Assembly (NCBI RefSeq): GCF_000737315.1
Contig: NZ_JMCB01000001.1
Span: forward strand, 744,001-808,000
Reading direction: 5' to 3'
DNA: 64,000 nt
Origin: Hyalangium minutum
GTDB taxonomy: Bacteria > Myxococcota > Myxococcia > Myxococcales > Myxococcaceae
Positions 3,639 through 14,415 of the stretch are shown in pieces (position 1 is the stretch's first letter; every line of letters starts with the position of its first letter). The position numbers and the translations under genes are program-made. Below the pieces are notes generated by a model. It had not been told where the DNA came from, ran no database searches, and worked only from the letters and a program-made list of their open reading frames with translations.

Positions 3639-4502
3639 TCAGCGGGAGACGGCGTCCAGGCGCTTCTTCGTGAGCTCCAGGTACTTCGGATCCAGGTCGA
3701 TGCCCGTGTAGCGGCGGCCCAGCTTCAGCGCGGCCACTCCCGAGGTGCCGCTGCCGTTGAACGGGTCCAGGATGGCCGCGTCCTCGGGCGTGCTCGCCTC
3801 GATGATGCGCTCCAGCAGCGCCACCGGCTTCTGCGTCGGGTGGCTGCCGAAGGCCTTCTCCTCGCGGCGCGGCGCAATCTGCGTCCACATGCGCCCGGAG
3901 CCATCCGCCGTCAGCTCCTCCTCGCCCGTGCGCGGCAGGTTCCACACGTCGCGCATCTGCTTGCCGCCGTTCTCCGCCTTCATCCGCGCGTAGTTGAACG
4001 TGTGCTGCAGCGTCTTCGTCTGCTTCGGCGACGCCCAGATGAGCAGCTCGGTGGAGTGCGTGAAGTACCGGCACGACAGGTTCGGGCTGGCGTTCGGCTT
4101 GTACCAGGTCACCGTGTTGAGCAGCTTGTAGCCCAGCTTCTGCATCGCGAAGCCGACGTTGAAGATGACGTGCTGGGTGCCGCTCACCCAGATCGTCCCG
4201 GTGGGCTTGAGCAAGCGCTGGCAGGACTTCAGCCACTCCATCGTGAAGGCGTGGTCCTCCTCCACCCCGCGCGACACATCCCACGCGCCCTTCTGCACCG
4301 AGGCGCGCTTGCCGCTCTTGCAGGTGAAGCCCCCGTTGGACAGGAAGTACGGCGGATCCGCGAAGATCAGATCGAACTGCTGCTCCGGGAACTGATTCAT
4401 CAACTCCACGCTGTCACCCTGATACAGCCGGTACGCCTCGCCCTTGGCAAAGGGAACCAGGGAGCGCTCGGCAATCTTCAGGGCAGTGGCTTCCGCGGAC
4501 AT
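3639..4502 (-). CDS. Orphan beta-class N6-adenine/N4-cytosine DNA methyltransferase, DpnA (M2.DpnII)-like
   Basis: IFADPPYFLSNGG, PNLSCRYFTHSTE, GKQMRDVW, HPTQKP and DPFNGSGT. DPPY precedes FxGxG. No endonuclease is adjacent. Confidence 0.88.
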   Translation of the reverse strand: MSAEATALKIAERSLVPFAKGEAYRLYQGDSVELMNQFPEQQFDLIFADPPYFLSNGGFTCKSGKRASVQKGAWDVSRGVEEDHAFTMEWLKSCQRLLKPTGTIWVSGTQHVIFNVGFAMQKLGYKLLNTVTWYKPNASPNLSCRYFTHSTELLIWASPKQTKTLQHTFNYARMKAENGGKQMRDVWNLPRTGEEELTADGSGRMWTQIAPRREEKAFGSHPTQKPVALLERIIEASTPEDAAILDPFNGSGTSGVAALKLGRRYTGIDLDPKYLELTKKRLDAVSR

Positions 4503-4688: not shown

Positions 4689-5006
4689 CTAGGCCTTGGC
4701 CTCGCCCTTCTTGCCCTTCTTGCCAGCGCCCTCGGCCGGAGCGGCGGCAGCGCCCTCGCCACCCGCAGCGGCGGCAGCGGCAGCAGCCTCCTTCTCCTTG
4801 GCGGCGTTGGTGGCGGCGTACTTCTTCCGGAAGCGGTCGACGCGGCCCGCCGTGTCGAGCAGCTTGTACTTGCCGGTGAAGAAGGGGTGGCAGTTGGAGC
4901 AGATTTCCACGGCGAACGAGCCGCGCGTGGACTTCGTCTCAACGATATTGCCGCACGCGCAGGTGATGCGGGCGGGGGGATAGACCGGGTGAGTCTCTGC
5001 CTTCAT
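4689..5006 (-). CDS. rpmE: 50S ribosomal protein L31 (zinc-binding type) with an Ala/Lys-rich C-terminal tail
   Basis: [29 protein letters not shown] and [20 protein letters not shown] before ATG 5006. Confidence 0.95.
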
Positions 5007-5114: not shown

Positions 5115-6230
5115 TTAGTGGCCGTGGCCGTCATGCCCCCCTCCTGGGGGCTCCAGCTTTTCCACCAGCTTCTGGACGGTAGGGTCGGAGGGTACATCCG
5201 TCCCCAGCTGCAGGTACGAGAGTAGATGCGTCCGGGCCGTTCCCGTTGCGCCCGCCTTCACCTGCTTCTGCAAGGCTACCCGCCTGGACTCGAAGGTAGC
5301 GACCGTCTCCTCGAGTGCCTTCTTGGCGGCCGGATCCTTTGTGGTGGCCAGGCGCTCCTTGGCCCGAGACAGGTTGGCCTCGATGTTCTTGAGGCTCTGC
5401 TCGGCCTGTCCTGCCGTGGCCAGGTCCACGAAGGCGCCCGGACCATTCACGGACAGCTCCAGGCGAGCGAGCTGGCGTCCCCGCTCTCCCGGCGGGATCA
5501 GCGTGGCCAGGCCATCCTTGGCGGCAATGCCTGGGGGACGGCCCTCGTGGGACTGGATCACGAAGTCCACGCCCTCGCCCTGCTGGGCCAGCCGCCGTGC
5601 GAGATCGTACGGTACCGCGGCGAGCACCACCACCACGTCCACCTTGTCCTTCTCGCGCAGGCGCTTGGCCTCGGCCAGCACGGCGGGAATGACGGGCTTG
5701 CCCTCGGCCCCGGGCAGAACGCCCTCGGGAGAGGCTCCCACCACGCCGAGCTTCAGCTCCCCAGCGGTGAGCACCGTGGAGGCCGGGAACGGCGCCTTGC
5801 CCTGCTTGTCCACGAGGTTCACGGACAGGACCTTCATCTTCGCGCCCTTCGCGGCGCCCTTGAGGAAGTCCAGCCCGAGCGTCAGGTCGCGCGCGCCCAC
5901 GGCCATGGCCGAAGTGCCCTGCGCGTCCATCTGCTTCAGGATGAGCTCCGCGCGAGCCTTCTCGTTCGCCTCCCCGCTGCTGGTGGGGAACTTGAAGAGC
6001 GCGTTGCCCGCATCCAGGACGAGCTGCGGCATCCCGCGTCCCCGCTCCTGGTCGATCATCATCTTTCGTCTGGCCAGACCGCCAGACGGGTTGTGGATTC
6101 AACCACAGGGGGCGATTTCGCCCCCGTTGTCTCCCGTGAACAACAGGGCCAGCTTCTTGGGCGCCGCGCCGGCCACGAAAGGCACCAGCAGCAGCGCGAG
6201 GGCGGCCAGAGCCACCTGTCGCAGTCTCAT
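5115..6230 (-). CDS. Secreted UshA/5'-nucleotidase-fold protein with an in-frame TGA at codon 44 (candidate selenoprotein, 371 aa)
   Basis: ATG 6230 gives a signal peptide, then LALLFTGDNGGEIAPCG-TGA(6099-6101)-IHNPSGGLARRK, in frame with ORF 5115..6062. ATGA overlap with the upstream stop. SECIS-like hairpin follows the TGA. Confidence 0.85.
6067..6088 (-). promoter_or_regulatory. Bacterial SECIS-like hairpin CGUCUGGC-GGUCUG-GCCAGACG
   Basis: Perfect 8-bp stem starting 10 nt after the UGA. The loop starts with G, 18 nt after the UGA. Confidence 0.75.
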
Positions 6231-7111
6231 TTGCTCCCCTTCTTCGGCGCCGCCGGAGCAGGTGCGGGTTTCGGCGCGGGCTTCTTCGCCTTGTCCAGCT
6301 CCGCCAGCTTCGTCTTCGCCGTCTTCGCCGCGTCCGACTTGGGGAAGGCCTTCACCAGTTCCTCCAGCGCCAGCCGCGACTCCTCCGTCATCTTCAGCTT
6401 GCCGAAGCAGTCCGAGGAGCGCAGGTACGCCTCCGGAGCCGACGGCGTCTTCGCGAAGTCCTGGATGACCTTGCCGTACTCGAAGAGCGCCTCGCGGCAC
6501 TTGTTCTCCGTGTAGTACGTCTCGCCCATCCCGAAGTGCGCCTCGCCCATGAGCGGGTCCTTGGCCCACTTCTTCATCCACTCTGAGTAGAGCTGACGCG
6601 CCAGGGCCAGTTCCCCGGCCTTGGCCTTCTCCTGCGCCATCGCGAGGAACTCCTTCTTGTCCTCCGGGCGCTTGAGGGCCTCGGCCTGCTTCTTCGCCTC
6701 GGCCTCCTTCTGCGCGTCCGCGCCCTGCTGGGCCAGCTGCTTCTTCTCCGCGTCGGACAGGAGCTTGCCGAGCCCCGCCTCCAGCTCGCCAATCTTGTAG
6801 AGGTACGTCTCCACCTGCCCGCGCAGGTTGGCCAGGTCCTCCACCGTCTTCTGCAGCTGGATGCCGATGTCCGCGGTATTGCGCCGCGAGCCCTTCTCCA
6901 GGCTCTCCAGCGCCTGGGTCACCTCGGCGACCTTCTCGTCGATGCGCGGCAGCGTGGCATCGAGCTGGGCGCGGGCCTGCTTCAGTTCCTCGGCCATGCG
7001 CGCGTTGTCTGCGCTGAGCTTGTCGACCTTTGCCTCGAGCGTGCGGCCCCGGCTGGCCGGATAGAAGCAGCCCGAGAGGGCGAGCAGGGCTAGCAATGCG
7101 AGCCGTCTCAT
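6227..7111 (-). CDS. CpoB/YbgF-like lipoprotein (coiled coil plus TPR)
   Basis: Lipobox LALSG-C, a long coiled coil, C-terminal TPRs (EAHFGMGETYY, APEAYLRSSDCF) and a Lys/Pro tail. Confidence 0.75.
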   Translation of the reverse strand: MRRLALLALLALSGCFYPASRGRTLEAKVDKLSADNARMAEELKQARAQLDATLPRIDEKVAEVTQALESLEKGSRRNTADIGIQLQKTVEDLANLRGQVETYLYKIGELEAGLGKLLSDAEKKQLAQQGADAQKEAEAKKQAEALKRPEDKKEFLAMAQEKAKAGELALARQLYSEWMKKWAKDPLMGEAHFGMGETYYTENKCREALFEYGKVIQDFAKTPSAPEAYLRSSDCFGKLKMTEESRLALEELVKAFPKSDAAKTAKTKLAELDKAKKPAPKPAPAPAAPKKGSK

Positions 7112-7184: not shown

Positions 7185-8969
7185 TCAGCGGGGCCGTCCC
7201 CCGCCCCCCTCCATCCGTGCGATGGCCTTCTCGCAGGCCACCCGGAGCCGGGCATGGTTGAGGAAGAACGGCGTGGGTCTCGCGCGGCCCTCCTCCAGGG
7301 AACGAAGCGCCTTGCGGTACTCGGCGGCCGCGTCAGCGAAGGACTCGCGCAGTTCCAACAGCATCGCCAGCAGGTAGCGCGCGGCGGAGAGGTCCGGATC
7401 CAGCGCCAGGCAGCGCCGCAGGTAGTCCTCGGTCTGCGAGTCCGACTCCGCCACCCCTTCGAGCACCTGGGTGAAGAGGCTGTCGGCCTCGGCGAAGAGG
7501 GGCTGCTCCTCCTGGCGCTCCTGCGACTCCGAGGGCTTCACGGTGGGGAACTGCCCGGAGGAGGGGCTTCCCCCCTGCGCCGGAGCAGCGCCCACCGAGG
7601 GAAACCGGCCCGAGTCTCGCCTCAGCTCCGTGCTGCCTCCCACCGAGGGGTACCGGCCCGAATCTCGCGGTCGTGGCTCCGAACCACCTCCCACCGAGGG
7701 GTACCGGCCCGAGTCTCGCCTCAGCTCCGAGCCGCCTCCCACCGAGGGGAACCGGCCCGAGTCTCGCTGGGGCTCGGTGCTGCCCACCGAGGGGAACCGG
7801 CCCGAGTCTCGCGACTGCGGCTCCGAGCCTCCTCCCACCGAAGGGAACCGGCCCGAGTCTCGCCTCAGCTCCGAGCCGCCTCCCACCGAGGCCAACCGGC
7901 CTGAGTCCCGCCGCGTCTCCGAGCCGCCCACCGCGGCAAATCGCCCGGACTCTTTCCGCGGCTCCGAGCCGGGCGCTGGCGGTGTCCCGGAGGGCGTCCC
8001 CGCCTCACGGGCCCAGTCTGGCGGAGGAATCTGCGGCAGGCCCCCTGTCATCGGCACCGTCTCCCGCCGGCGCTCCAGCCCCGAGACCGGCAGCTCATGG
8101 GGGAGCAGTCCCATCCCCGCCGTGCGGAAGCCCTGAGACGCGCTCATGTCCGGCGTGCGGACATAGAAGAAGGCGTGCTGGCTGCGGATGATGCGCAGGC
8201 TCGGCGGGGCGTGCAGCAGCGGCTCCGCGGCCGACAGAATCAGCGTGCCCCCTGGCGCGAGCCGCTCGGCCAGCGCGCTCACCACCCGCTCGAAGGCCTC
8301 GGGGGTGAAGTAGATGAGGACGTTGCGGCAGAAGATGACGTCGAAGCCCTCGCCCCCTCCTCCGGATGGGGTGGGGTATGGCGTCTCCATCAGGTTGTGG
8401 TGCTGGAAGATCGCCCGCTCGCGCAGCTCCGGTATCAGGATGGCGCGCGAGCCATCCGGCATGAAGTAGCGCTCGCGCAGCGAGCCCGGCAGCCTCCGCA
8501 CCTGCTCCCCGGGGAAGCTCAGCGTCCGCGCCCGGTTGAGCGCCGCCTCGGAGATGTCCGTGCCCAGCACGGTGCTGCCCTGATCCGCCCGCGCCTCGTC
8601 GAGCATGATGAGCAGCGTGGCCACCTCCTCGCCCGTGGCGCAACCCGCGCTCCACACGCGCAGAGGCCGCCCCAGTGACTTCGAGACCAGCGGCTCCAGC
8701 ACGTGAGCGCGGAAGTCCTGCAGCTGCACCTCGTCCCGGAACAGGTCCGTCTTGTGGACGGCCACCACGGAGATGAGCGTGGAGAGATCCGCCGCGCCCG
8801 AGGGCGACTGCAGGTGGAGCAGGTACTGTTGCTCGGAGAGTGAGCCCTGCAGCACCGTCAGCCGCTCATCCAGTCTGCGCCGCTGTGCCCCGCTCAAGGC
8901 CATGCCCGTCCGGGCCGCGATATAGGCCTGGACGAGCAATGTGGAGCGGGGAGGCGCCAAGCCGGTCAC
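7185..8969 (-). CDS. cheR: CheR methyltransferase with an internal tandem repeat and C-terminal TPR (CheR3-like)
   Basis: [41 protein letters not shown] overlap with cheB. Confidence 0.9.
7591..7960 (-). repeat. Coding tandem repeat, 8 copies of ~45-51 nt encoding (R/S/Q/P)RDSGR(F/Y)PSVGGG(S/T)E
   Basis: Repeated cccaccgaggg(a/g/t)accggcccgagtctcg blocks, all in frame in cheR. Confidence 0.9.
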
Positions 8970-10024
8970 CGCCCCTGGGCGAGAGGTTCACCCCGCGTCA
9001 GCCGCACCAGCGACGTGGCCACCTCGTCCCCATGGACCAGGTGATCCACCGCGTTGCGCTCCACGGCCGCCCCGGGCATGCCGAACACCACACAGGACTC
9101 CTCGTTCTGAGCCACGGTGACACCGCCGGCCTGCTTGATGGCGAGCATGCCCGCCGCCCCGTCCTCGCCCATGCCGGTGAGGATGACGCCCAGCGCTCGC
9201 CGCCCGTACGCCTTGGCCACGCTCTCCAGCAGCACCGTGGCCGACGGCATGTGCCCGTCCCGCTCCACGCCCGGCTTGAGCGCCACGCGCCCTCGGAACG
9301 GAATCACCATGTGCATGCCGGGCGGAGCAATCAGCACGTGCCCCGGCATCAGCAGCTCGCCGTCCTGCGCCAGTCGAACCTTCAGCTTCGAGGAGTTGGC
9401 CAGCCACCCCGCCAGCGACTCGGCGAACGCGGCGTTGATGTGCTGGACGATGGCGATGGGCGCCGGGAAGTCCGCGGGCAGCTCGGAGATCATCCGCTGG
9501 AGGATCTGTGGCCCCCCCGTGGACGCGCCCACTGCCACCATGCCCACGCTGGCCGGAAGGACCGAGGGCAGGGTCTCCGGCTTGAAGGCCGGTGTAATCC
9601 GCTTGGGCCCTCGCAGGTGGCGGATGACGCGCACCGAGGACAGCAGCTTCAGCTCCTTGGCCAGGTTCCACGCCTCGAGCCCATCGTCGATGGACGGCTT
9701 CACGCGCAGGCCCAGCGCGCCGAGCTCCAGCGCGCGGCACGTCAGCTCCGGAGCCTGGCTGCGCGGGTCCGCGGTCAGCACCAGGATGGGCGTGGGGCAC
9801 TCGGCCATGATGTGCTCCACGGCCGTGAGCCCATCCATCACCGGCATGTCCACATCCATGGTGATGACGTTCGGGCGCAGCTCCTTGACGCGAGCCACCG
9901 CCTCCTTGCCATCAGCGCACGTGGCGACGACCTGGAGATCCGGGTCCTGCCCCAGTGCTTCGCAGATGAGCTGTCGGCAGATGAGCGAGTCATCGACCAC
10001 CAGCACCGACACTTTCTTGCCCAT
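8966..10024 (-). CDS. cheB: CheB methylesterase (receiver plus esterase), CheB3-like
   Basis: VVDDS and TMDVDMP receiver. Catalytic GASTGG, VQH and TGMGEDG. Start at MGKKV. Confidence 0.93.
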
Positions 10025-10093
10025 TACCTGTGCATACCCCGTGCGCGCCCTCAGGAGTATACCCAATGGCTCCCGGTGTCCTTAGGGCGGCCT

Positions 10094-12598
10094 TTACCCC
10101 AACAAGCGCTTCACGACATCCACCAGATCCTGGCGCACCAAATCTCCCTTGGTGATGTAACCGTCCGCCCCCACCGCCAACCCCTTCTTCCGGTCTTCCT
10201 CCCCTCCACGGGTAGTGAGAATAATGACTGGGAGTCGGTTAAGGGTGTCATGGCCCTTGATCTGGCGGGTGAGCTCCAGTCCGTCCAGGCCGGGCATCTC
10301 CAAGTCAGTGACGACCAGGTCCACCTGGGTGGTGGAGAGCAGGTGGATGGCCTCGGCGCCGTCCGCGGCGGAGATGGTGTCATACCCGACCGCCTCCAGG
10401 AGCGCGGCGATGAGCTCGCGGGTGAGGGGTGAGTCATCCACGACCATGATGCGGCGGCGGTGGACCTCCTGGGCCCGCTCGGAGGTGCGGGGCAGACGGG
10501 CCGTCAGGGAGCCATAGGCACCTGCGGTGAGGTAGGCGGCGGCGAGCACCATGGCCAACCGGCCGTCCGCCAGGGTGGTGGCACCGCTGAGGTGCCCGAA
10601 CCGGCCCAGCAGGCCTCTCAGGGGAAGGATCGCCTGGACACGCTCCTCCAGCACGCGCTCCACGGCCAGCGCGGCGGTGGCGCCCTGGCTGCGGACCACG
10701 AGCACCAGCGTGCCATCCGTGGGAGGCCGCTCGGGGGCCAGCCCCAGCAGGCTCGAGAGGTGGCAGAAGGGCAGCACCCGGCCGTCCACGTTCAGCGCCG
10801 GCCGCCCGGCCAGCTCCGTCATGGCCGACAGGTCCAGCTTCACGGCCCGGGAGACATGGGTGGCGCTCAGCGCCAGCGTCTCGTCCCCCGCCTTCACGAA
10901 GAGCAGCGGCGCCACCGTGAGGGACACGGGGACGCGAATCTCGAAGATGGTGCCCCAGCCGGGCGCGGACTCGACGCCCACATCTCCGCCCAGCAGCTGC
11001 ACCGCGCTGCGCACGGCGTCCAGCCCCACGCCGCGGCCGGAGATGTGCGTGGCCACCTCGCGCGAGGAGAAGCCGGAGAGGAAGATGAGGTCTCTCGCCT
11101 GGCCCTCGGTGAGCGACGTGGCGGTCATCTCATCCAGGAAGCCCCGGCGCACCGCCACCTTGCGCAGCATGGCCGTGTCCAGGCCCACGCCGTCATCCTC
11201 TACCCGGAGGACGATGCGGTTACCCTCGCGCGAGGCGCGCAGCGTGAGGCAGCCCTTGGGGCGCTTGCCCGCAGCCACGCGGTCCACCCGGCTCTCCAGG
11301 CCGTGATCCAGCGCGTTGCGGATGAGGTGCAGGAGCGGCTCGCGCAGGGCCTCCACCACGGCGCGGTCGGCGCGGGTGTCCTCGCCGTCCATCACCAGAT
11401 CCACTTCCTTGCCCAGCTCGCGGGCCAGATCGCGCACCACCCGGGGGTAGGGCTCGAAGAGGACCGACAGCGGCAGCATGCGGACCCGCTGCACCTCCTC
11501 CACCACCTGCCCCAGGTCCCTCAGCTCCTCGTTGGCGAGCAGCTTGGCCTCGCGGTGCAGCGCCGCGGCCAGGTCCTTGGCCTTGTTCAGCTTCGCTGCG
11601 AACGCCGAGCCCGCCGGGCCCAGGTCCTCGGCCTCGCGGGCCAGCTGCGCCAGCTCCCGGGCCAGCCCGAGGCGGCGGCCATTGGCCAGCTCCCGCCGCC
11701 GCGCCACCTGCGTGAGGTTGGTGGCGGCACTGGTGAGCAGATCCAGGCTGGAGACATCGATACGAACCGACCTGTCCGCGCGCGGCTCCGGCCTCGCGGG
11801 CTGAACGGAAGGGCCCTGCGCGGCAGAGGAAGCGGCCGCGCCGGGACCGCTGAGCGGAGGCCCGGACCGGACCGGCGCCTGGGGCGACAGGTTCGGGGCC
11901 AGCGGGCGCATTGGCTGAGACTGGCCGCCCGGCGACACAGACGCCGTGCCTCCCGAGGGAGTCGCCCCGGGGTTACCGGCCCTGGATGCCGAACCCGCCC
12001 CAGTGGCTCCGGACGCAGCGCCCTGGAGCGCCGCGGTGGGCAAGGGAATCGGCGTGAAGAAGCGGGGGGCGGGCACCGGCTGGCTCGGCGCGGAGGGCGG
12101 CGAGGCGTGCTGCGAAGCCGCGGAGGCCGTTCCCGGAGCGGGAGTTTGCGCCGGGGTGGAGGCCGGCTTCGGAACCGCGGGGAGGACCACCGGGTCGGGA
12201 ACGGAGCTCCCATGCTGGGACTGCTCGCTCTTGGTGCGCTCCCGCAGCCACGTCACGAGCTTCTCCACCTCGGGGGCATCGTCGGACGCCACCAGGCCGG
12301 AGAGGATCATCACCGCGTCCGCGGACTTGAGGAGCGCGTCAGCGGAGTCATGGGACATCGAGTAGGAAACAGGCTCACTGGATTTGACGAGCTCCTCCAT
12401 CTCGTGGACGAGCACGTTGATGCTGTCGAAGCCCATCATCCGGGCCTCGCCCTTGAGGCCGTGGAGCTCGCGAAGCGCCTTGCGCCCCGTCTCCACGTTG
12501 CCTCCGGAATCCAGCTCCACGATGGCGCGGTTGATGCGCTCCAGGCGCACCCCGACCAGGTCGCGGAACTGCTTGAGCAGACGATCCCGCGGTGTCAC
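10094..12598 (-). CDS. cheA: Hybrid CheA (Hpt - Pro/Ala linker - HATPase - CheW - receiver), CheA3-like
   Basis: LRELHGLKG Hpt, HLIRNALDHG, EDDGVG, GFSSR, SGRGVGLD, and a C-terminal receiver (VTDLEMP). Confidence 0.93.
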   Translation of the reverse strand: MTPRDRLLKQFRDLVGVRLERINRAIVELDSGGNVETGRKALRELHGLKGEARMMGFDSINVLVHEMEELVKSSEPVSYSMSHDSADALLKSADAVMILSGLVASDDAPEVEKLVTWLRERTKSEQSQHGSSVPDPVVLPAVPKPASTPAQTPAPGTASAASQHASPPSAPSQPVPAPRFFTPIPLPTAALQGAASGATGAGSASRAGNPGATPSGGTASVSPGGQSQPMRPLAPNLSPQAPVRSGPPLSGPGAAASSAAQGPSVQPARPEPRADRSVRIDVSSLDLLTSAATNLTQVARRRELANGRRLGLARELAQLAREAEDLGPAGSAFAAKLNKAKDLAAALHREAKLLANEELRDLGQVVEEVQRVRMLPLSVLFEPYPRVVRDLARELGKEVDLVMDGEDTRADRAVVEALREPLLHLIRNALDHGLESRVDRVAAGKRPKGCLTLRASREGNRIVLRVEDDGVGLDTAMLRKVAVRRGFLDEMTATSLTEGQARDLIFLSGFSSREVATHISGRGVGLDAVRSAVQLLGGDVGVESAPGWGTIFEIRVPVSLTVAPLLFVKAGDETLALSATHVSRAVKLDLSAMTELAGRPALNVDGRVLPFCHLSSLLGLAPERPPTDGTLVLVVRSQGATAALAVERVLEERVQAILPLRGLLGRFGHLSGATTLADGRLAMVLAAAYLTAGAYGSLTARLPRTSERAQEVHRRRIMVVDDSPLTRELIAALLEAVGYDTISAADGAEAIHLLSTTQVDLVVTDLEMPGLDGLELTRQIKGHDTLNRLPVIILTTRGGEEDRKKGLAVGADGYITKGDLVRQDLVDVVKRLLG

Positions 12599-14415
12599 CC
12601 GTCACTCCTCGGGGGCGGCACCTGGCTGAGGTTGATCTGGAAGCGCTCCACCACGTTGCGAAGATCCAGCGCGAGCACCAGCAGATCACCGTTGGCCGTG
12701 CTCACCTGCTTGGTGGCGTTCAGGCTCTGCTGGGTGATGCGGAGGATGTCCGCCATGGTGTCCGCGAGCTGATCGGTACCGGTCTGCTGCTGCTGGGTGG
12801 CCAGCGAGATGGAGCGCACCGCGTCCGACGTCTGGCCGGCCAGATCGAGGATCTGCTTGAGGGACTCGGAGACCTGCTGCGCCAGCGAGGTGCCCGTGTC
12901 CGTGGCGCGCACGCCGCCCTCCGTGGCCGCTACCGCGGCACGCGAGGCCTCGCGCACCTCCTCGATGAGGCCTTCGATCTCCTTGGTGGACTCCAGCACG
13001 TTCTCCGCGAGGCGGCGCATCTCCGCGGCCACCAGCGAGAAGCCCCGGCCCACCTCGCCCGCCTTGGTGCCCTCCAGCTCGGCGTTGAGCGCCAGCAGGT
13101 CCGACTTGTCGGCCACGCCGTTGATGAACTCGACGATCTTGCCGATCTGCTGCACGCGCTTGTTGAGCCGGGTCACCGCCGAGGCGATGGCCTGGTTGTC
13201 GTTGCGCATGCGGCTCATGGAGGCCAGGAAGGCCTCGGCGCTGCCCTGCCCGCCCTGGGCCGCCGCGAGCGTGCGCTGGGCGATCTCCGCCACCGAGCCC
13301 GCGTTCTCCGCGATCTGCCGCGCGCTCCGCGCCAGTTCTTCCGTGGTGGCGCTCGTCTCATCCAGCGAGCTGGCCTGCTCGGCGGCGCCCGCCTCGTAGC
13401 GGCCCGAGGTGCTGAGGATCTCCTCCGTGGTGGCGCTGATCTGCGCGCCCGCGCGCTGAAGCTGCGAGAGCACGTCCGCCAGGTGCGCCCGCATCATCGC
13501 GAAGGCCGCTGAGACGGCCCACACCTCATCCTCGGCGGGGATCAGCCGGGGCGAGGCCAGGTTGCCGTCCGCGATGCGCCGCGCCTCCTCGGCGAGCTGG
13601 CGGATGGGACGTCCCACCAGCGTACCGCCCAGGTACGCGGTGGTGAGCGCCAGCCCGAACACGAGCAAGCACAGCGCCCCGCCATAGATGAGGGCTTCCT
13701 CGCGCAGCTCCTTCACCCGCACCAACTGCTCCTCCTGGGGCGTGGCCAGCACCTCCGCATAGGTGCGCTCCGCCAGCGAGGAGGCGAGGTTGGAGGTGAG
13801 CAGCGCGGGCGTCACCACGGCGATGGCGGTGAAGAGCACCAGCCGCACGCGGATCTGCGCACGCCGGGGCAGCGCGGCGATGAGCTGCGAGTGGCTCAAC
13901 CCGAGCTCGCTCAGCCACAGCACCACCTGGCGGGCCCTCAGGGTGACCATGCAATGGACGAGCAGCGCGGTGATGGGGCCAAAGAGGAACCCCAGACCGG
14001 CCGCGCTCAAGCCCAACCGCCAGCCGGCATGGCTCCCCGTGGCCAACACAACGCCCAGCACCGACGTGCTGAGCAGCCACATGGCCAGCGACTTGACGAA
14101 CGTCGTGTCCGCGGCGCGGGTGGCCTCCACCGCAGCCAGGGACAGGTTCTCCGGGGTGGGGGCCACATCGCCACGCTCCAGGCCGCGCAACACCCGGACG
14201 CTCCTCATCAACATCGCGCCGCCCGCAACCGAGGCGGCCGCACAAGCCAGCACGCCAGCCCACATCACCCAGGCGAAGGAGCCGTCCAGCTGGTCCTTCA
14301 GCGTGAGCGCGGCGTAGTAGGAGGCCAGCCCCGCCCCGATGAGGTTGCCCACGGGGACGGGGACCGCAAGGTGCCGGCTGAACGAGGCGCGCCGGGAAGT
14401 GCCGCTCGTGCTCAT
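12595..14415 (-). CDS. Membrane-bound methyl-accepting chemotaxis protein (Mcp3B-like)
   Basis: Multi-TM N-terminus, HAMP domain, IADKSDLLALNAELEG/GRGFSLVAAEMRRLA-type signalling hairpin. Confidence 0.9.
   Translation of the reverse strand: MSTSGTSRRASFSRHLAVPVPVGNLIGAGLASYYAALTLKDQLDGSFAWVMWAGVLACAAASVAGGAMLMRSVRVLRGLERGDVAPTPENLSLAAVEATRAADTTFVKSLAMWLLSTSVLGVVLATGSHAGWRLGLSAAGLGFLFGPITALLVHCMVTLRARQVVLWLSELGLSHSQLIAALPRRAQIRVRLVLFTAIAVVTPALLTSNLASSLAERTYAEVLATPQEEQLVRVKELREEALIYGGALCLLVFGLALTTAYLGGTLVGRPIRQLAEEARRIADGNLASPRLIPAEDEVWAVSAAFAMMRAHLADVLSQLQRAGAQISATTEEILSTSGRYEAGAAEQASSLDETSATTEELARSARQIAENAGSVAEIAQRTLAAAQGGQGSAEAFLASMSRMRNDNQAIASAVTRLNKRVQQIGKIVEFINGVADKSDLLALNAELEGTKAGEVGRGFSLVAAEMRRLAENVLESTKEIEGLIEEVREASRAAVAATEGGVRATDTGTSLAQQVSESLKQILDLAGQTSDAVRSISLATQQQQTGTDQLADTMADILRITQQSLNATKQVSTANGDLLVLALDLRNVVERFQINLSQVPPPRSDG

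Follow-up and report, generated by a model that had tools for sequence, protein, structure and literature searches.

We analysed a window of 64,000 nucleotides from Hyalangium minutum (contig NZ_JMCB01000001.1, positions 744,001 to 808,000 of the forward strand) and found that the gene at 6230..5115 on its minus strand is, with a probability of about 0.9, a genuine and conserved selenoprotein gene in which an in-frame TGA encodes selenocysteine (Sec). An earlier note, made from the letters alone, had proposed that two open reading frame (ORF) fragments at this place hide one frame for a secreted UshA-like protein with a C-G-U motif and a selenocysteine insertion sequence (SECIS) hairpin. That interpretation was supported by the alternation of TGA and TGC at the codon in question, by a conserved hairpin behind it, by the relationship of the protein to the UshA-like family, and by the miscalled annotation of the locus.

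Translation of 6230..5115 (-) gave a single frame of 371 codons followed by a TAA stop. The one internal stop in this frame was the TGA at 6101..6099 (-), codon 44, in the context ...LFTGDNGGEIAPCG*IHNPSGGLARRK..., and there were neither frameshifts nor further stops, as the reading of one frame behind two fragments had it. The proposed coupled start was also found, with the ATG at 6230 overlapping the stop codon of the upstream ORF as ATGA. An in-frame ATG or GTG overlapping the upstream stop (A/GTGA) was kept in 50 of 53 TGA loci, which fixed the true start and indicated that translational coupling is conserved. The frame opened with a hydrophobic N-terminus, MRLRQVALAALALLLVPFVAGA|AP, and the protein is predicted from it to be exported via a signal peptide. 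The whole protein contained a single Cys (residue 42) and a single Sec (residue 44). The expectation that standard pipelines would split or miscall such a gene proved correct. In the GenBank assembly GCA_000737315.1 (contig JMCB01000001.1) the locus was split into genes of 43 and 314 amino acids (aa), and the products called in relatives began after the TGA.

Relatives recovered by protein search fell into two length classes, one of 299-324 aa starting just after the TGA position and one of 367-378 aa with a Cys aligned to the TGA (GEIAxCGC); the database name "5'-nucleotidase" was carried on truncated sequences. At E < 1e-30, 202 representatives of 50%-identity clusters were matched. Cys occupied the Sec column in 53 of the 57 full-length representatives with the motif, and about 80 representatives were N-terminally truncated, as unrecognised Sec genes would be. 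When one genome of each species was scanned, 80 loci were recovered, all in Myxococcaceae-like genomes, and a further scan of metagenomes, for which divergent truncated relatives served as seeds, gave 79 loci showing the motif. The aligned codon was TGA in 54 genome loci (a count that includes L081, the window's own locus) and TGC in 27; in the metagenomes it was TGA in 71 of the 79 loci and TGT or TGC in 8. The alternation thus fell on exactly the TGA codon, with conserved flanks. TGA genes were carried by Hyalangium, Myxococcus, Corallococcus, Pyxidicoccus, Archangium, Cystobacter, Vitiosangium, and Citreicoccus, and among them the flanks were near-invariant (GDNGGE(I/V)APCG-U-xHNPSGGLARR), with protein identity among TGA-retaining loci falling as low as 48%. 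The ratio of nonsynonymous to synonymous substitution rates (dN/dS) against eight relatives ranged over 0.18-0.40 in codons 1-43 and over 0.25-0.67 in codons 45-371. Against the nearest relative it was 0.32 upstream and 0.25 downstream of the TGA, and the coding constraint therefore lay on both sides of the codon.

The claim that a perfect stem with a GGUCUG loop follows the UGA by 10 nt held on folding. The stem comprised 8 bp, CGUCUGGC (6088..6081) with GCCAGACG (6074..6067), the apical loop GGUCUG lay at 6080..6075 (-), and the free energy was -16.4 kcal/mol. The published model of the bacterial SECIS (bSECIS) describes an apical loop of 3-9 nt, an upper stem of 4-16 bp, a G in the first two loop positions, a UGA-to-loop distance of 16-37 nt, and a minimum free energy of no more than -7.5 kcal/mol (PMC13188914, Fig. 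2 legend). The hairpin fell within each of these limits, including the 18-nt spacing. Of the 125 TGA genes (54 genome, 71 metagenome), 124 shared the GGUCU loop without change, and across 61 distinct Sec-gene sequences the loop always started 18 nt after the UGA. The same loop motif had been named in the earlier note for the E. coli fdhF SECIS, and the MG1655 record did contain it, with the fdhF UGA followed by 18 nt and then GGUCUG, an identical UGA-to-GGUC distance. In both genes the hairpin lies immediately 3' of the UGA, within the coding region, with GGUCUG at its apex. Unlike that of fdhF, the window hairpin has no evident bulged U and carries its 6-nt loop on a continuous 8-bp stem, the sequence of which is unrelated.

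We found constraint at the RNA level in the sequence that forms this hairpin. The invariant GGUCU loop forces a rare GGU codon, and the constrained region around the UGA uses codons that are rare in a high-GC genome (UGU, GGU, UCU, AGA, and CGA). At conserved residues of codons 33-55, the synonymous-codon entropy of the TGA genes was 0.20 bits versus 0.94 bits elsewhere in these genes (Mann-Whitney p 2e-7), whereas the Cys paralogues showed no depletion by the same measure (1.24 bits for codons 33-55 versus 0.82 bits). Pairs were counted on the named 8-bp structure, a count used in place of an RNAalifold consensus, and 81.8% of cells were paired, compared with 21-43% when the partner was slid. 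Double changes were present in 11 stem cells, a number reached by 0 of 500 shuffles. Divergent members had conserved the hairpin by compensatory stem changes, with perfect compensated stems in L125 (CGACGGGC/GCCCGUCG) and L138 (CGGCGGGC/GCUCGCCG), a compensatory stem CCUCGGC/GCCGAGG in L099, and one more in L149. The codon of Arg-54 covaried with codon 49 as UCU-AGA, ACG-CGU, and GCG-CGC. The covariation that the earlier note had named as support was therefore present. The single gene without the GGUCU loop was L158, which lies on metagenome contig Ga0315268_10066002, carries TGA, is highly divergent, and reads ...DPCG*GVPMGGVARR. Its downstream hairpin was of a different form, GGUAGCCCG...CGGGCUACC at -19 kcal/mol, and the form of the SECIS therefore varies within the wider family.

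A second hairpin, GGGGGCG-AAAU-CGCCCCC, was located before the UGA at 6125..6108 (-), with 7 bp and a free energy of about -15 kcal/mol. The 27-nt upstream element, including the UGA, was present exactly in 50 of the 53 other genome Sec loci, and divergent Sec genes kept the hairpin with other pairs, such as GGAGCG/CGCUCC in L086. When compared with synonymous randomisations, the TGA genes had a mean z of -2.27, with 81% below -1.64, whereas the mean z in the Cys paralogues was 0.04. Only the TGA genes show RNA-level selection on the upstream hairpin. The published bSECIS model is purely 3' and contains no 5' element (PMC13188914), hence no equivalent of this hairpin, a comparison that concerns the model, as the upstream sequence of fdhF was not folded here. 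The upstream hairpin may pace the ribosome, or it may insulate the SECIS arms from mispairing with G/C runs. A third hairpin, UGUGG-UUGAAU-CCACA at 6107..6092 (-) with the UGA in its loop, folded in the window and in close relatives. It was set aside, since it needs His46 and has disappeared from the metagenome Sec genes that read RANP instead of RHNP, and it is probably incidental.

The TGA genes formed one syntenic group, in the order cheR, CpoB-like lipoprotein gene, UshA-like gene, and rpmE. A CpoB-like gene was upstream of 52 of 53 Sec loci in genomes and 65 of 71 in metagenomes, and upstream of only one Cys locus. The CpoB-like ORF matched TIGR02795 (tol_pal_ybgF) at E 1.4e-20, below the cut-off of that model, and tetratricopeptide repeat (TPR) models as well. 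The Cys genes were paralogues at other locations, and their neighbours gave no functional clue. The sole exception was L076:3001-4023, from the metagenome-assembled genome Myxococcaceae bacterium MBR_H10.11, where a TGC gene retained the cpoB-like/rpmE synteny. Because this gene occupies the place of the Sec gene with a TGC codon, it represents an orthologous Sec-to-Cys replacement, and both RNA hairpins were lost or decayed in it.

The relationship to UshA was supported by profiles and by fold. The best NCBIfam match of the window protein, with Sec written as Cys, was NF041198 ("UshA_like_PCGU, UshA-like (seleno)protein"; E 6e-48), which aligned residues 20-359 to profile positions 17-374 of 519. 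Weaker matches were obtained to SoxB, UshA, and cyclic-nucleotide phosphodiesterases. Pfam gave no match to the protein, including none to its metallophosphatase or 5_nucleotid_C families. Matches to hidden Markov models (HMMs) of UshA, CD73, YfkN, and SoxB scored far below the family cut-offs. The fold was modelled on a 60%-identical Cys paralogue in place of the window protein (predicted local distance difference test score, pLDDT, 89; predicted template modelling score, pTM, 0.84). Foldseek matched this paralogue model best to E. coli UshA, in the N-terminal metallophosphatase domain of that enzyme (E 2e-21; 1oie, 1hp1, 1ush), and next to Thermus 5'-nucleotidase and CD73. The motif P-C-G-U/C was present as APCGU at residues 40-44 and was aligned in homologues. 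In the profile alignment to UshA, the C-G-C/U triplet formed a three-residue insertion after motif I.

UshA-type 5'-nucleotidases and SoxB share the N-terminal fold with the window protein, but their dimetal ligand motifs are replaced in it. In the HMM alignment to 1ush, DxH (DHH) became D-N-G/R, GD (GGD) became G-N, and GNHE became G-A-R-D. The C-terminal nucleotide-binding domain of UshA was also absent. In its place, the paralogue model ended in two long helices (a helical hairpin) and a short tail, and the tail of the window protein was short and His-rich, with no CxxCH haem motif. The protein therefore does not have the features of a functional UshA or 5'-nucleotidase. It had the features of the COG0737 UshA-like CxU family, namely UshA homology by HMM and fold together with C42-G-U44. 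It fell outside NF049981, the UshA-like selenoprotein family 2 (29.8 bits versus at least 140), the motif of which is CxxU instead of CxU. It also fell outside NF041198 as curated, scoring under its cut-off and lacking the region of four CxxCH motifs. Proteins of 511-530 aa passed the NF041198 cut-off in four of five cases (298-569 bits; the fifth scored 249.3), and all five ended in four CxxCH motifs, whereas the short forms scored 142-182 bits and had none. Longer proteins of the NF041198 type with four C-terminal CxxCH motifs were represented by P0361, P0382, P0338, P0352, and P0329. Proteins of about 1200 aa (P0299, P0303, and P0311) shared this N-terminal domain and had their four CxxCH motifs at the opposite end. 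The joining of the PCG(U/C) domain to CxxCH haem motifs points to a redox role of the domain. By analogy with NF041198, in which the same domain is fused to a tetrahaem cytochrome, the most likely role of the PCGU domain is periplasmic redox or chalcogen-transfer catalysis by a Cys/Sec pair, and not nucleotidase activity, an assignment that we make with low confidence.

Several observations weighed against the selenoprotein reading. The SECIS region did not exceed in stability sequences that encode the same peptide with randomised synonymous codons (z -0.26), and the case for the hairpin therefore rests on loop identity, spacing, and covariation rather than on free energy. RNAalifold returned a consensus of only 2 pairs on the 61 distinct SECIS regions, since the divergent members have their register shifted around a bulged A. 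No Rfam SECIS or other relevant family was matched, either at gathering thresholds over the whole window or at permissive E-values over 5950..6250; only chance-level matches appeared. At the protein level, the NF041198 score of 163.6 bits was below the curated cut-off of 275, and the structural model was that of the Cys paralogue, with lower confidence in its CxC loop (pLDDT about 74). ARAGORN found no tRNA in the 64-kb window and hence no tRNA-Sec, and tblastn with E. coli queries found no SelA or SelB in the window or in the 80 loci; selD was not searched for. A database search with the Anaeromyxobacter SelB (PMC1794560 supplement) gave 120 matches, all Anaeromyxobacter-like, and was uninformative on H. 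minutum. Moreover, H. minutum does not appear in the published table of Sec traits (PMC5029168). Table S2 of the same survey does list Myxococcus xanthus, M. fulvus, M. stipitatus, Corallococcus coralloides, Cystobacter fuscus, and Stigmatella aurantiaca as Sec-utilising, and genera in that list also carried the TGA gene. Sec use in this bacterial family, the Myxococcaceae, is established, and an aerobic carrier is by itself unsurprising.

We considered whether the TGA might be a simple nonsense mutation, either specific to H. minutum or shared by the entire lineage, which leaves a pseudogene and no full-length protein. The two separate genes called in GenBank and the lack of Sec machinery among the sequences searched would agree with this, and a recent loss of that machinery in H. 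minutum alone may be imagined as a variant of it. However, the same TGA was kept in all 125 Sec loci across their divergence, the frame contained no other lesion, dN/dS was below 1 on both sides even against the nearest relative, and both hairpins were perfect in the window itself, making a pseudogene extremely improbable. Equally improbable is that two real genes are present, one for an exported peptide of 43 residues that stops at the UGA and a separate one for a product of some 315 residues begun at an internal ATG (6062). ORF callers yield exactly this split, and the ATG is situated 12 codons past the TGA in the window. Nevertheless, this ATG was not conserved, with ACG, ACC, GTC, and other codons in relatives, and the called products scattered over 299-324 aa. 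The residues between the TGA and the ATG (xHNPSGGLARRK) were near-invariant at the protein level, the Cys homologues read straight through, and the downstream product would have neither a signal peptide nor the fold's first beta-strand. Taken together, the dN/dS values below 1, the conserved start, and the synteny made both a pseudogene and two independent genes very unlikely.

The remaining alternative accepts a full-length product and differs in the amino acid inserted. The UGA would be read by a near-cognate Trp or Cys tRNA, with the RNA structures stimulating generic stop-codon readthrough. Trp was present at the position in 2 of the 57 full-length representatives, both distant, and the conserved upstream hairpin lies outside the standard bSECIS model. 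Set against this, in motif and spacing alike the loop is a copy of the SelB-binding fdhF apex, the site shows the alternation with Cys that typifies Sec/Cys pairs, the family is curated as a (seleno)protein, and the carriers belong to genera listed as Sec-utilising. We therefore regard readthrough without Sec as very unlikely, and the selenoprotein reading as the best explanation of the locus.

According to the selenoprotein reading, the UshA-like gene would be transcribed with, and translationally coupled to, the CpoB-like lipoprotein gene. At codon 44 the ribosome would meet the UGA, and the hairpin that follows after 10 nt would serve as the bacterial SECIS, as in established bacterial Sec decoding, and would recruit SelB-GTP-Sec-tRNA(Sec). 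Selenocysteine would then be inserted, and translation would run on to the 371-residue product. The predicted product has an N-terminal signal peptide and an UshA-like metallophosphatase fold, with the dimetal ligands mostly replaced and C42-G-U44 in the three-residue insertion. The myxobacterial PCGU domain, having no fused cytochrome, would work with a separate electron partner. We also entertain the more speculative idea, which we think rather doubtful, that the 6125..6108 hairpin is a second cis-element of Sec recoding and that the PCGU loop on a metal-depleted phosphatase fold is a new Tol-Pal/CpoB-linked periplasmic Cys/Sec site.

The earlier note had placed UshA-like CxU selenoproteins mainly in anaerobic deltaproteobacteria and metagenomes and had inferred that an aerobic, predatory myxobacterium exports one. 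The novelty implied by this was overstated. A "COG0737, UshA-like" CxU selenoprotein family was described in 2008 from the GOS (Global Ocean Sampling) metagenome with 76 Sec sequences (Zhang and Gladyshev, PLoS Genet; PMC2398784). COG0737 UshA-like selenoproteins were counted in 12 organisms in a 2016 survey (Peng et al., PMC5029168 Table S3), in which the genera Myxococcus, Corallococcus, Cystobacter, and Stigmatella were already listed as Sec-utilising. NF041198, an NCBIfam model named for PCGU, is listed with the motif CxU in reviews of 2022 and 2026 (PMC9312934, PMC13188914). The window gene shares with the Zhang and Gladyshev family the UshA homology, the CxU motif, the Cys homologues, and a predicted bSECIS. 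With NF041198 it shares a P-C-G-U/C motif after the first beta-strand, Sec/Cys alternation, and the UshA-like N-terminal domain, but the long NF041198 forms end in four CxxCH motifs where the window protein has its helical hairpin and short His-rich tail. The published COG0737 lists give no organism names, and neither the upstream hairpin nor an architecture linked to CpoB and lacking the cytochrome is described in them. No searchable paper linking the UshA-like selenoprotein family to myxobacteria was found. The gene is thus a known kind of selenoprotein (UshA-like CxU), in a short, CpoB-linked, cytochrome-less form that is missed by the curated model.

Recognition of this form puts right an annotation error that recurs systematically, in no fewer than 54 myxobacterial species genomes and in many contigs from soil metagenomes. 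There the gene either is divided in two or is miscalled as a truncated "5'-nucleotidase" that lacks its signal peptide and active-site loop, because the curated family model is tuned to the longer, cytochrome-fused form. It also brings a widely conserved selenoprotein, predicted to be exported, to predatory soil bacteria that are mostly aerobic and have known selenoproteomes of only 1-3 entries. The 125 Sec genes, the Cys paralogues, and the one orthologous Sec-to-Cys swap provide a natural data set suited to the study of SECIS constraints written into coding sequence, including those of the 5' hairpin. The genetically tractable Myxococcus xanthus carries an orthologue (L046) and is a practical organism in which to address the function of UshA-like CxU proteins.

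Table 1. Positions of the probable selenoprotein gene, its sequence elements, and its immediate neighbours in the window.
Feature	Position	Strand	Basis
Probable UshA-like selenoprotein coding sequence	5115..6230	-	Single frame; Cys homologues align end to end; NF041198; dN/dS
Predicted signal peptide of the general secretory (Sec) type, residues 1-22, MRLRQVALAALALLLVPFVAGA, AxA cleavage site	6165..6230	-	N-terminus reading
Probable Sec codon (UGA) at residue 44, in the P-C-G-U motif	6099..6101	-	TGA/Cys alternation
Putative bSECIS hairpin CGUCUGGC-GGUCUG-GCCAGACG, 10 nt 3' of UGA	6067..6088	-	Folding and conservation
Upstream hairpin GGGGGCG-AAAU-CGCCCCC, ending 6 nt 5' of UGA	6108..6125	-	Folding and conservation
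CpoB/YbgF-like TPR lipoprotein gene, 294 aa, lipobox LALSGC	6227..7111	-	TIGR02795, TPR matches
rpmE (ribosomal protein L31), downstream neighbour	4689..5006	-	NF000612, 97.8 bits, above cut-off

Other genes were observed around this locus. A chemotaxis cluster encoding a methyl-accepting chemotaxis protein (MCP), CheA, CheB, and CheR (7185..14415, -) was directly upstream of the CpoB-like and selenoprotein genes, and the linkage to cheR was retained in most genome loci. The ORF of the CheR-like methyltransferase (7185..8969, -) contained about nine tandem copies of a 13-14-residue unit, which separate its methyltransferase portion from a TPR-like portion at the C-terminus. Downstream of rpmE, a CcrM-like adenine DNA methyltransferase was encoded at 3639..4502 (-), which matched NF050803 at E 5e-67, below its cut-off.

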